NCBI GenBank assembly: GCA_965202585.1
Contig: OZ241830.1
Location: 73,222,001-73,286,000, forward strand
Origin: Thalia democratica
Taxonomy: Eukaryota
Direction: 5' to 3'
Length of the DNA stretch: 64,000 bases
The stretch's first letter is position 1, and every line of letters begins with the position of its first letter. Below the pieces are notes generated by a model. It worked only from the letters and a program-made list of their open reading frames with translations. It did not search any database and was not told the DNA's origin. Positions 470 to 18,278 of the stretch are shown in pieces. A program made the translations under genes and the position numbers.

Positions 470-3400
470 GATAGAGAACTACACCCCGAACTTGACTCCT
501 TGCCAGGTTCGCAACATCTTCAAGCAGGCGTTCAGAGAGTGGGAGAAAGTCGCGGAGATCACCTTCAAAGAGGCGGATTCCAAGGATGAGAAAGTCGACA
601 TGCGGATCGGATTCGGATACCGTCAGTTGAAAATAAAAATTAATACATATATACATACCGTTAGTTTATGAAACCTTAATTGGATGAAAAGTTTTATAGA
701 AAGTTGTTTTTACACTTCTGCATAACTTATAACGCATATATCAAATAAGTTTACCTATCAAAAGATGCATGAGTTTTCGCTAATGAAATTCACGTATAAA
801 TTTTTATTTAAGCTAAGATTTTCAAGCGATAACTTTTTTTCATACTTTAGTCGAGTAGTTACATCAAAAATATTAAAAGGACTCGAAAATAGTTTAAAAC
901 TGACCTGGGCGAATTCTAGATAAAAAGGTTGTGGAACATTTTGATATCTTTAATATTTTATTTGAAAATATTCAAACTTGTTTAAACACCAAACAGGCGA
1001 GCACGGCGACGGGTACCCATTCGACGGTGCAAACGGGTTGCTTGCACACGCCTGGGCCGCGGGTGCCTACGATATAGCGGGTGACGCCCATTTTGACGAA
1101 GCCGAGTTCTGGACGCTCGGCAAGGGAAGAGGTTCGTTGGGCATATTTGTTTGACCGGTAATCAACCGGACATTGGCACGTATTATTTGTTCACTTACAT
1201 AGGCCTTGGTAGTTCATCTGGGCAAGTAGATAAAATTCACTGTAACAAAATAAAAATTTATTAAATGTCTTGTGGTTTTATGAAAACAAATAGAGAGATT
1301 TCAACTACTGAAGAAAAAATAATGAATTTGTTTTTTCAAGTGTAAAATAAATTTTTGAAAGATTAAACTCATAACAAAATGAAGGTAAAATTATAAATGT
1401 ATAAAATTTTCTAGTGACAGTCACATACGAAGGTAACTCTAACGGGGCTTCGTGCAACTTTCCGTTCTACTACAAGAATCAGGAATACTACAGCTGCATC
1501 AACGTGGCCAGAGATGGCGCTGCAGACAATGGTCACGAGTGGTGCGCCACCACGGAGAATTTTGACAGGGACGGAAAATACGGCCTGTGTTCCAGCGAAC
1601 GTGAGTGCTGTTAGATTTTACAATGCAAAAAAAAAAATATTTTAGATATTCCAAAATTTATAAAGCAAGTTAGATATACTTTTAATTCAAATAGCTGTCT
1701 TTTGAAATAAAAATTTGGATGTTAATTTTGGCAAGTAGTACTCCTACAGTGCTAAAACATGTAGTTATTTTTTCAAAACAGCCTAGCTTTTACGTTATGA
1801 AATACACTTTGTTAGAATTATGTGATACAAGTGTGGTTTTTGTAGTGTTTTTTGTACAAGCTACAAAAGTTATAGAATCCTCGAAGGTCATAATGATAAA
1901 AAATAAACTTTTATATTATAATATCTGTCATTAAAATTAATTATTTTAAAGTGATTCGGAAGTTTAAGGTTCTTTTACTTTCAATGTTATTATGTTAATC
2001 TTATCGATTTTTTTTCAGAAATTAAACTTTTATTGGTTTTCGTTAGATAAGTATATTAAATTATTCAATATTCTTTTTATTTGAAATCATCAAGTTGTAA
2101 CCTATGGATGTAGGTACCTTTAGATCATAAACTTAACTTATAATAAATACTTATAGTCAATGATACTTAGGGCTGCTCTATTAAAAACTAGGTATGACAC
2201 GAGTTAACATATTTTATATAAAGAACAATTGCAAACACTAACACATATACATAAAAAACATCAAATTTAGAAAACACTTTAAATGTGATCAAAACCTTTA
2301 CACAAGATTTAATCTAGCAAGAATATACTTTAAGAATGTATAAAACAAAATACGATTTAACTACTTAGGATGTAAATAATAAATACTGGGTGCACGACTA
2401 TTCAAATTCGGACAATTCAAATTCCGACAATTCAAATTCTTAATAAAAGATTAAAATGACTAAAAACAAAAAAGTAATGTGTATTTGACTTAAATAAAAA
2501 ATACATATGTAAATCATATTAATATCTACAGGTTATTTTTTTCTTTTTGCAAAACATTAAATTTTTTTTGTTAGTGGCTTATATAAAGTAAAAAACATAG
2601 TTATTTTTAGTAATTTTAAAATATCTTGAAAAGTATTTTAGATTTTGAAAAAAAGAAAAAAAGTGGCTTTAGATATTATTAAGATCTACATATGTATCTT
2701 TTATTTTTTTCAAATTTATATTACTTATTGAGATATAGTCCTTTTAATATTTTTTTAAGAATTTGAATTGTCGGAATTTGAGTTGTCCGAATTTGAATAG
2801 TCATGTAACCATAAATACTTATAAAAATAACACTAATAAAAACACACTTTATAAAACAAAAGAAAGCAATATGAATGTCTATTCATCATTATTATGTTTA
2901 CTGCAGCAGACTGTGGCTAGAATCTCCCCGGCTGTCTGTTGTATCAGCTTATATAAAACATTCCATAACTCAATGTTGCATTAGGGTTTCTGGTAAACTT
3001 CCAACCAAATCTAAACAGTAATCAAGTGCAGCTTGATATCCTGTTACAAAGTTAAAAATGATTTTTATTACATTACAAACTTTTTCAGCAGCTTGTTATT
3101 CTTACTGTAAAACAAGCTATACAAAAACCTTTTAAGTTCTCTAGTGTTAATCTTGGCAAACTGTACTACCATAGTGCTGCTAAAATACATACTTATTTTT
3201 AGAAAGTAATTTTTTTCTGAATATATAAACTATCATATACTTACTATCTTGAACAAAAGATATATAAAATACTACATTATTTTAAGAGTGCTGTTGACAT
3301 ACTTAAACAGTTTTGAAAACTACCACAAACATTTTCGGTAAAAAATCAAGTTATGAAAATTATTGATGCTTTAAATACCACGTACGTAAAGTTTTAGGTT

Positions 3401-16700: not shown

Positions 16701-18278
16701 CCTGTTTGAGTACTTGTATTTTTTAAATATTTTATTAGTTTCTAGCTCTATATTCTGTTAAATATTTTTTAGAATGTTCTAAAACTGCTTGTTTTGTTAT
16801 TAAATTACTCACTTACAAAACACGTTTTAAGCATAAACTGCAGTATCTGTTTAAAACTTTAACAACCAAAACTGTTGCCCAAAGTACTTACCACAAGCTT
16901 TAAATTAAAAAAAATGTTAAGCTTACTTGCTATTTCATTACAGTAGTTGCTAAACTTATAAAATTTCTATGCTATTTAAAGTTTTAGCGCTTATTTACAA
17001 ACCTGTATGTGACGGGCATTTTCGTGAACTTGGGTTCCCCCTGAAAAACAGTGAAACCCGAAGGTTTGTCGGGAACTCCACATCTTGGGCTCAACATCTT
17101 TTCCAGGGTGTCATCGTCCAATTCTCCTATAGTTACATTAGTTTATTTTCAATTTTATTTGAAGTTTTGTTATTATACTTACTATTGAAATAAAAAAATA
17201 ATAATTTTTCACTTACCATACATAGTGCTTTAGTTTTGTACAAAGTAACAAATTTTAATCAACTATTTTAATTAAATTGATACACAATTAAATTGAATTT
17301 CATAAAAAGCTTACCAGTCACGCGTAGTCCATAATTTTTTTGCATTTTTTTCACGAGTTTAGTCATGTCGTTGACTAATTCATTTTCATTTACATACTTG
17401 TACCTTTTCATAAAGTCCTAAAAACATATAAGTTTGTTTAAGTACGAAAATTTTTGTATATTTTTTTATGGAAGCATAGTTATTTATACAAATGTTAACT
17501 TTTTGTACCCTTTTTTGTCTAAAAAGAATGGTTTGAATTTTTAGAAAGTAATTTTTAAACGTTATCAGAACTAGTAGCAAAATAGTTAAAAGTTAAATCT
17601 AAAGACAATAATATAAATAAAAAGTGACAAAAAATTACCTTTGAATACAATTCTGCACATATTTTTTTAAGCATTGTAAAAATATTAAAACTATTTCTTA
17701 CAAGTAACTAATTTATCATCATGAGTATAAAAATCTTAATTGTTGCTGAAACAATCTAATTAATTAATTTATGTTAAATTAAAACTTTCAATTTTTAAAT
17801 GAAAAAAACTCACGTAAGCCAACCTCTCCCGATCGATCTTTTTTTTGGGGAGTTTCCCGGACCTGGTCGTCTTGTCGTTCTTAACGCTCGGATCGGGGGC
17901 AACGCCTCTGTTCGCCTCGATTCCCGCCAAAACCTGTCTCCTCGGGGCCGTCCCGTCGCCGAAAACCCCCTGGTAGTGGGGCTTCACCTTCTTCACCGAC
18001 AGCTGCAGTCCCTCGGGTTTGTCGGTCTGTCGTCTCGATCCTGGGGCGCCCCCAGTGTTGAGACCCGCGGAGAGGTTGATGGGGGGAGGGACGCGGGTCT
18101 CGGGGGAGGAGGGGCCCCTCAAGTAGGGCTGGTTGTACAAGTCGACGCGCTTGAAGAGCTTCCTGTTCCACTTGTTCTTGATTCGGTACTTTCCCGCCGT
18201 TCTTCGGTACTTTTTCGGTCTTTTCGCCGAAACTGATACCAATATTGCGAACAGAATGAGGGTAAGTCTGATATTCAT
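10768..18278 (-). CDS. Gelatinase-type matrix metalloproteinase (MMP2/9-like) paralog B; complete, 16 exons, 822 aa, predicted secreted and active
   Basis: Exons (minus) 18278-17814, 17417-17315, 17126-17003, 16654-16503, 16247-16113, 15896-15711, 15344-15171, 14760-14619, 14203-14081, 13798-13650, 13223-13108, 12837-12699, 12181-12070, 11809-11753, 11547-11429, 10940-10768 sum to 2469 nt, all GT-AG and in frame. Signal peptide [18 protein letters not shown], prodomain with cysteine switch PRCGVPD, three FN2 repeats, [12 protein letters not shown], Met-turn, hemopexin domain with terminal Cys; no TM/GPI tail. Confidence 0.95.

Follow-up and report, generated by a model that had tools for sequence, protein, structure and literature searches.

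A 64,000-nucleotide (nt) stretch of the Thalia democratica genome (contig OZ241830.1, positions 73,222,001 to 73,286,000; hereafter the window) carries two convergent genes of the gelatinase type of matrix metalloproteinase (MMP). In gene A, on the plus strand, glutamine replaces the catalytic glutamate of the zinc-binding HExxH motif, whereas gene B, on the minus strand, keeps the glutamate. The visible reading frame of A is open and has been under purifying selection for a long time, and the 3′ splice site of the exon that encodes the altered motif has also been lost. We put at roughly one in two (about 0.5) the probability that A is a maintained non-catalytic gelatinase paralogue whose transcript still includes this exon.

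Replacement of the catalytic glutamate

The zinc motif reads HQFGH in A and HEFGH in B, and the altered codon lies within exon 9.

4789..4911, + strand: zinc-binding exon 9 of gene A, 123 nt, phase 2-2, so that skipping preserves the frame
4850..4852, + strand: CAG (Gln) where HExxH has its catalytic Glu; the codon is GAG in B and GAA in the cDNA-like contig L002, described below

In MMPs the Glu of HExxH is the general base, and its change to Gln kills the activity while the fold is retained. The position is Glu in nine of nine tunicate outgroups and in all but one of the 312 proteins with a readable zinc motif of the HxxxHxxGxxH type that we fetched, the exception having Lys; Gln at this position (HQxxH) was found in none of the 312. 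The three zinc-binding His residues and the Met-turn ALMYP are kept in A, the latter being the same in B. The solved structures closest to the zinc exon of A were 1EAK (human proMMP-2 crystallised in an engineered inactive form, HQFGH) and then 1CK7 (HAFGH), which are both inactivated forms of gelatinase A.

Three replacements in exon 9 are derived in A, and each removes an acidic residue (D to N, E to Q and D to G); with 7 acidic residues among 40, the chance that all three would fall on acidic residues is 0.0035, a post hoc figure. Across the 141 positions that are invariant in B and nine tunicate gelatinases, A is altered at a single one, the catalytic Glu, against 6.2 expected (p = 0.008). 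As its sequence stands, A is unable to encode an active protease under every reading considered here. Its motif being HQxxH and not HExxH, A is, on this assignment, a family homologue outside the catalytic membership of the matrixin M10A gelatinases, and its retention of the fold-determining residues while the catalytic residue is replaced is one of the marks of a maintained pseudoprotease.

An inverted pair of gelatinase genes

The exons of both genes are GC-rich and span 470-18278 of the window, which is AT-rich (GC about 24-35% per 2-kb windows) and contains no runs of N. The gene models are as follows.

470..8551, + strand: gene A as far as it is visible, with exons 4-16 out of 16, from exon alignment to B, the splice-site listing and Pfam searches of exon open reading frames (ORFs)
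470-621, 997-1131, 1415-1600, 3739-3912 and 4323-4464, + strand: gene A exons 4-8, the last three encoding the fibronectin type II (FN2) repeats FN2-1, FN2-2 and FN2-3
4789-4911 (zinc exon), 5196-5344, 5816-5931 and 6671-6809, + strand: gene A exons 9-12
7324-7435, 7648-7704, 8043-8161 and 8379-8551, + strand: gene A exons 13-16, with the TGA stop at 8549-8551
18278..10768, − strand: gene B, complete, 16 exons, 822 amino acids, from six-frame reading, alignment to A, tunicate proteins and L002
18278-17814, 17417-17315, 17126-17003 (PRCGVPD cysteine switch) and 16654-16503, − strand: gene B exons 1-4
16247-16113, 15896-15711, 15344-15171 and 14760-14619, − strand: gene B exons 5-8
14203-14081 (zinc exon), 13798-13650, 13223-13108 and 12837-12699, − strand: gene B exons 9-12
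12181-12070, 11809-11753, 11547-11429 and 10940-10768, − strand: gene B exons 13-16
8552..10767, no strand: spacer between the convergent stops; homologous 3′ flanks, ~75% identical and inverted, occupy its first ~150 nt from either stop

Six-frame reading, arm-to-arm blastn and exon-by-exon alignment revealed 13 colinear exons of the same length in A and B. The stop codons (8549-8551 in A, 10770-10768 in B) face each other tail-to-tail with 2,216 nt between them. A is known from exon 4 on, and its exons 1-3 and promoter would fall to the left of the window; the visible frame is open over 591 codons, with no stops or indels. In B, exons 1-3 were read directly from the sequence and encode a signal-peptide-like start (judged by eye), a basic extension of ~150 residues in exon 1 and a prodomain with the PRCGVPD cysteine switch. 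The encoded order is thus an N-terminal basic extension, the prodomain with its cysteine switch, a matrixin domain with three FN2 repeats, and a hemopexin domain. Pfam searches of the exon ORFs matched Peptidase_M10, fn2 and Hemopexin: Peptidase_M10 in the zinc exon of each gene and in B exon 5 (E about 1e-11 to 1e-12), and fn2 in the FN2-1 exon (E = 8e-16), with three FN2 exons present in both genes. Both Cys residues of the pair that closes the C-terminal hemopexin domain are present in A and B (TICDID in exon 11, FRCR in exon 16).

The earlier note on this DNA, made from the letters alone, had described two tail-to-tail MMP2/9-like genes with a common exon structure, stops 2.2 kb apart and an active-type motif in B facing HQFGH in A. 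The equal-length exons, the Pfam domains, the measured spacer and the CAG at 4850-4852 bear this description out. Its further statement that the other 12 visible exons of A stay in frame and differ mostly at synonymous sites also holds, since outside exon 9 the genes differ by ~74.5 synonymous and ~26.5 nonsynonymous changes.

Several alternatives were discarded in building these models. A minimal version of exon 10 (donor at 5263 in A) was dropped in favour of 5344 on the basis of tunicate protein homology and the L002 contig. Chance resemblance, allelic mis-assembly and collapsed haplotypes were ruled out, as the exons are 79-98% identical while the introns are 53-81% identical or unalignable, with many indels. 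A and B are an old inverted duplicate pair of tunicate-type gelatinases.

Intron 3 of A contains a minisatellite (window 153-470, period ~52 nt), the units of which repeat the junction of intron 3 and exon 4 (cag followed by GATAGAGAACTA). The units provide about six decoy acceptors ahead of the true exon 4; in B two units of this kind occur, at ~16740-16654.

Age of the duplication and gene conversion

A close relative is represented by a spliced, cDNA-like contig of 2300 nt from JGI sample 3300018943 (L002, encoding P0267), which is 87.5% identical at the nucleotide level to the coding sequence (CDS) of B and 85.6% identical to that of A. Bases 379-2469 of the B CDS, from late exon 1 to the stop, align to it with one 20-nt gap, and it confirms all B exon junctions that it covers from late exon 1 onward. 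At all diagnostic sites of exon 9 it is of the B type, and an A-type partner was not recovered from the same sample. At L002:776-800, 20 extra nt follow directly after exon 6 and shift the frame, so that gene callers split the transcript into two ORFs; a donor further downstream may have been used, or part of the intron retained.

In ten exons A resembles B far more than either resembles L002, the proportion of synonymous differences (pS) being 0.06-0.27 between A and B versus 0.35-0.69 to L002. Exons 9, 13 and 14 depart from this pattern: A and B differ there by 18, 15 and 12 nucleotides respectively, A and L002 by 15, 11 and 13, and B and L002 by 11, 9 and 7, which places B nearer to L002 than to A. 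Lineage-specific synonymous changes in these three exons number 19 for A, 15 for B and 9 for L002, compared with 22, 27 and 113 in the other exons (Fisher p = 1.3e-8). Because B is nearer to L002 than to A in exons 9, 13 and 14, the duplication dates back at least to about the time at which the L002 species diverged, and gene conversion later homogenised most of the gene. Synonymous divergence between A and B is indeed heterogeneous across exons (p = 5e-8), and the introns are a patchwork of alignable (71-81% identical) and unalignable segments, consistent with conversion. Conversion as the whole cause of the exon identity was ruled out, since the unconverted exons 9 and 13 still have a ratio of nonsynonymous to synonymous divergence (ω) of ≤0.1.

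Intron 8 lies within a recently converted segment and is 77% identical between the genes. Its first 60 nt are 98% identical, far above the intron mean, and the end of exon 8 with its donor (CTTCCAATTATGACGTGTT) recurs 36 nt downstream in intron 8 of both genes (4465-4525; 14618-14558).

Selection on the two copies

Between A and B, the Nei-Gojobori method gave 89.5 synonymous differences over 371 sites and 29.5 nonsynonymous differences over 1402 sites, corresponding to a synonymous divergence (dS) of 0.29, a nonsynonymous divergence (dN) of 0.021 and ω of 0.073. Values for the separate lineages are parsimony counts polarised with one outgroup, L002/P0267.

A lineage: 41 synonymous, 26 nonsynonymous, ω ~0.17
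B lineage: 42 synonymous, 2 nonsynonymous, ω ~0.013
A exon 16: 4 synonymous, 13 nonsynonymous, ω ~0.9 (near neutral)
A exon 14: 3 synonymous, 5 nonsynonymous, ω ~0.4
A exon 9: 8 synonymous, 3 nonsynonymous, ω ~0.10
A remaining exons (~1124 nonsynonymous sites): 26 synonymous, 5 nonsynonymous, ω ~0.05

The equal numbers of synonymous changes in A and B indicate the same time and mutation rate for both copies. In the remaining exons B has 2 nonsynonymous and 29 synonymous changes. No replacement on the A lineage falls in FN2-2 or FN2-3, exon 13 is free of nonsynonymous changes in all lineages, and in A all three FN2 repeats and hemopexin exons 11-13 and 15 show B-like constraint. A polarisation with distant tunicates, superseded by that with the close outgroup, had assigned 13 changes to A and 2 to B and left 11 ambiguous. 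GC content at third codon positions is 0.635 in A and 0.650 in B, genome introns having ~25% GC, and a drift of A towards AT as a sign of decay was not significant (57 vs 44 sites, p = 0.23). By these counts A was a constrained coding gene for nearly all of its long history, and it is also clearly a derived and partly relaxed copy. Of the marks of an unprocessed pseudogene, ω near 1 is seen only in exon 16, and no frameshift or stop interrupts the 591 codons.

B and L002/P0267 do not differ at any of their last 26 residues, C-terminal tail included, despite an overall synonymous divergence of ~0.7, and A has many changes in this stretch (B counterpart at window 10768-10845, − strand). This suggests that the conserved tail of B may be an unrecognised functional motif that was lost in A. 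It also tells against the hemopexin part of the idea that A acts as a decoy, as the last hemopexin exon and the tail are its least constrained part (ω ~0.9). The conservation pattern instead favours the FN2 collagen-binding part as the portion that has probably been preserved.

Splice signals of the zinc exon

4787..4788, + strand: lost 3′ splice site of A exon 9, AT in place of AG (cacat before TGACGG, vs ttttcag before TGACGG in B)
4733..4734, + strand: nearest upstream in-frame AG in A (gcaag before T), a putative cryptic acceptor that would add 18 residues within FN2-3; non-YAG
14204..14287, − strand: B-specific 84-nt insertion or duplication at the exon 9 acceptor, from the intron 8 alignment

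The exon 9 acceptor is the only one of the 13 visible in A to have been lost. All remaining exon boundaries in both genes are canonical AG...GT, the acceptors being otherwise all CAG or TAG. The exon 9 donor of A (gttttaaa) is further from the consensus than that of B (gtaagaaa). A second in-frame AG in A lies 27 nt into exon 9 (gagag before C, again non-YAG) and would remove 9 residues; either in-frame AG may serve as a cryptic acceptor.

The history of the site can be read from B. Two parts make up its 84-nt insertion: a relic of the first 38 nt of exon 9 (14287-14250), with AAAG before it and a TAA in frame, and 46 nt of AT-rich spacer closed by ttttcag, the acceptor in current use. Intron 8 of A is colinear with the relic copy rather than with the functional exon start of B, and the B acceptor is, on this alignment, a neo-acceptor made by the 84-nt duplication or insertion. 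Since intron 8 of A aligns to the relic with its AAAG, there was once an AG at this position in A, and the A lineage lost it after intron 8 had last been converted. The border between the recently converted segment (intron 8) and the old segment (exon 9 and intron 9) falls exactly at B 14204-14287.

These signals raise the possibility that A is functional but that its mRNA skips exon 9, the acceptor having been lost first and the replacements and the weak donor representing the decay of an unused exon. With a phase of 2-2 and a length of 123 nt, the exon can be left out and exon 8 joined to exon 10 in frame, and the lost acceptor, the weaker donor and the three replacements all fall in exon 9, while the A lineage shows no nonsynonymous change in exons 7, 8 or 10. 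The protein would be without the helix that binds zinc and without the final strand and Cys of FN2-3; from general knowledge, loss of the helix, the zinc ligands, the Met-turn and the FN2 Cys would probably misfold the catalytic and FN2-3 modules. Exon 9 has moreover accumulated 8 synonymous and 3 nonsynonymous changes on the A branch (ω ~0.10), so that it was coding nearly throughout and any skipping must be recent. We consider this explanation improbable.

A consensus error or a variant of one haplotype could also account for the CAG, the AT or both, in which case A would be a second active gelatinase. Each lesion is a single-base change relative to B or to the B relic, and an independent assembly of the species was not found. 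The remainder of the locus nevertheless marks A as a truly diverging copy: exon 9 has two more derived replacements and a weaker donor, nonsynonymous changes are distributed 26:2 between the copies, the polypyrimidine stretch before the lost AG differs from B at several bases, and introns that are 20-45% divergent rule out collapsed or duplicated haplotypes. An artefact or rare allele thus seems very improbable.

A maintained paralogue or a dying gene

The most serious competitor is that A is a nascent pseudogene, functional and probably catalytic until very recently, with the Glu-to-Gln change and the acceptor loss as its first lesions. There are two independent disabling lesions, in the catalytic Glu and the AG acceptor, and the latter is young, given that the B relic retains its AG and that intron 8 was recently converted. 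Nonsynonymous changes are 13-fold commoner on A than on B, and exon 16 of A has evolved at about the neutral rate. Moreover, with an intron indel-to-substitution ratio of 0.083, a neutral phase of ≤1% divergence would often leave a gene free of frameshifts.

The distribution of the changes is harder to reconcile with such a gene. The lesions are bunched in one 123-nt exon; the chance that exon 9 would receive at least 3 of the 8 nonsynonymous changes that lie elsewhere than in exons 14 and 16 is ~0.02, our own binomial on the polarised counts, which assumes that all of A is neutral and ignores the longer branch of exon 9. The 5 changes in ~1124 sites cap a whole-gene neutral phase at less than about 0.9% divergence (our own Poisson bound), and exon 16 has been near-neutral over the whole post-conversion period against ω of 0.05 elsewhere, which makes its relaxation exon-specific. 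Finally, as a matter of prior odds, a pair that has outlived a speciation is unlikely to be caught so soon after the death of one copy. Whole-gene neutral decay would spread nonsynonymous changes evenly, in contrast to their concentration by exon in A; the clustering of lesions in exon 9 and the restriction of relaxation to certain exons therefore favour a selected gene with altered function over uniform decay. We regard the dying-gene explanation as possible but doubtful.

Several points weigh against the maintained, non-catalytic paralogue that we prefer. Exons 1-3 of A and its promoter would lie beyond the window, and A is known from genomic sequence. Its lineage ω, 13 times that of B, would also fit relaxation toward loss. 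The ω values of A cover the whole branch, so that the selection they record may have acted before the Glu-to-Gln change. The exon that encodes HQFGH has no AG acceptor and a weaker donor, which may mean that it is skipped or that the gene itself is failing; the only in-frame AGs that could act as cryptic acceptors are non-YAG. An A-type or HQ orthologue turned up in no accessible collection, a finding of little weight because these collections hardly cover the lineage.

The idea of a maintained pseudoprotease, put forward in the earlier note, is accordingly only partly upheld. Catalytic disablement stands (Gln at the active site, with 1EAK as the matching structure), as does long and strong purifying selection (ω of 0.07 for A vs B); dN/dS on A, which had been named there as a check, came to ~0.17 on the A lineage and not ~1. 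The loss of the AG acceptor of the zinc exon of A had, however, escaped the note; the HQxxH orthologues that it proposed to look for in relatives were absent from the 312 proteins with a readable motif, in which the lineage is hardly represented.

Under the maintained-paralogue reading, an old tail-to-tail duplication yielded A and B, after which gene conversion repeatedly homogenised most exons. B stayed a conserved, active-looking enzyme. A, which purifying selection has retained from about the time of the L002 divergence or earlier, has specifically lost the catalytic Glu, two nearby acidic residues and the constraint on its last hemopexin exon and tail. It would make, or until very recently have made, a non-catalytic homologue that binds collagen or gelatin and could occupy a substrate or an inhibitor without cleaving it. 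The state of the sequence, its age and its history under selection come directly from the analysis; expression of A, the splicing-in of exon 9 despite the lost AG and a decoy effect on B are steps that we infer.

A stronger form of this proposal is that A is a substrate-trap gelatinase, selected for longer than the speciation interval as an extracellular, non-cleaving binder of collagen, gelatin or inhibitor that tunes B, with the acid-to-neutral changes and the rewritten tail being adaptive. We offer it tentatively.

Other features of the window

A dispersed repeat of ~620-680 nt occurs at 2096-3104, 20016-20633 and 22009-22685, with copies 90-99% identical. The first copy lies within intron 6 of A, which measures 2138 nt against 366 nt in B, and has an internal insertion at 2388-2812. 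The repeat probably represents a non-autonomous mobile element. A mitochondrial carrier gene is present twice, at ~29600-34800 and ~61400-63900 on the minus strand (Pfam Mito_carr, E down to 1e-15). The exon ORFs of the two copies are ~90% identical, which suggests that the carrier pair may be a second duplicated gene in the window.

Comparison with known systems

MMPs are among the most studied extracellular proteases, and laboratories produce their Glu-to-Gln form as a trap for substrates and inhibitors. Provided that it is expressed, A would offer a natural experiment on the non-catalytic functions of the FN2 and hemopexin domains and on enzyme/decoy gene pairs; if it is a substrate trap, it would be, as far as we are aware, the first naturally dead MMP with a function, and if it is merely a dying gene, the finding is an ordinary one. 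Whatever A is, the locus is a clean case of concerted evolution, in which the few exons that escaped conversion record the older duplication. We know of no description of a natural dead gelatinase, nor of a natural, selectively maintained dead MMP. Our literature search on natural inactive MMPs and tunicate gelatinases returned only general papers on pseudoproteases and papers on ovulation in Ciona. Tunicates are the sister group of vertebrates, and their gelatinase-type MMPs have been linked to ovulation (PMC6786877).

Searches beyond the annotated proteins were similarly sparse. The zinc-exon ORF of A gave no candidates in the word-indexed protein collection, from which the species is absent. 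With P0267 as the query, JGI metagenome contigs gave 34 pattern matches, none of which was confirmed. A degenerate DNA pattern for AAHQFGHxxGLxH hit only two GC-rich bacterial contigs among the metagenome contigs. A natural HQFGHALGLQHD motif occurs in a metzincin-like protein encoded by a bacterial metagenome contig of 67% GC (L004:9439-9477); this protein has no relationship to the tunicate genes.

The relatives of B, found by a profile-free search with its zinc exon and then by word-indexed protein searches, are tunicate gelatinases. They come from Ciona savignyi (H2ZQ62, P0005), Ciona intestinalis (P0151), Clavelina lepadiformis (P0152), Phallusia mammillata (P0153) and Styela clava (P0155, P0012), and are labelled "72 kDa type IV collagenase-like" or "fibronectin type-II domain-containing protein". 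Like A and B, the tunicate gelatinases have an N-terminal basic extension, a cysteine switch, three FN2 inserts, an LPPLxLExCGG linker and a hemopexin domain. Identity is 47-55% over the full length and up to ~60% over the catalytic/FN2 half for the Styela proteins, and B aligns from residue 1 to the Ciona protein P0151 at 47% identity. All of those listed differ from A in having HExxH. In Styela clava (OZ123524.1, L001:1154-17756), two gelatinase copies are adjacent and 3.6 kb apart, a pairing like that of A and B, which indicates that local duplication of a gelatinase gene recurs in tunicates. The Styela copies, however, are arranged head-to-tail on one strand and are both HExxH and active-looking, whereas A and B are tail-to-tail and A has HQxxH.

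Non-catalytic ADAMs and iRhoms are cases in which a protease fold has been kept under selection without its catalytic residue and the role has moved to binding or regulation. The pseudoprotease concept is treated in papers that include one on iRhom2 (PMC11248996). These proteins are conserved in many species and have demonstrated functions, whereas A is known from the sequence of one genome alone.

Vertebrate MMP-2 and MMP-9 share with A and B the three FN2 repeats before the zinc helix and the hemopexin domain, at 40-49% identity, and differ from them in that A and B have an N-terminal extension of ~150 residues and an intron within FN2-3. The HQFGH of 1EAK is the same motif that A carries naturally; in vertebrates it is a laboratory mutation.

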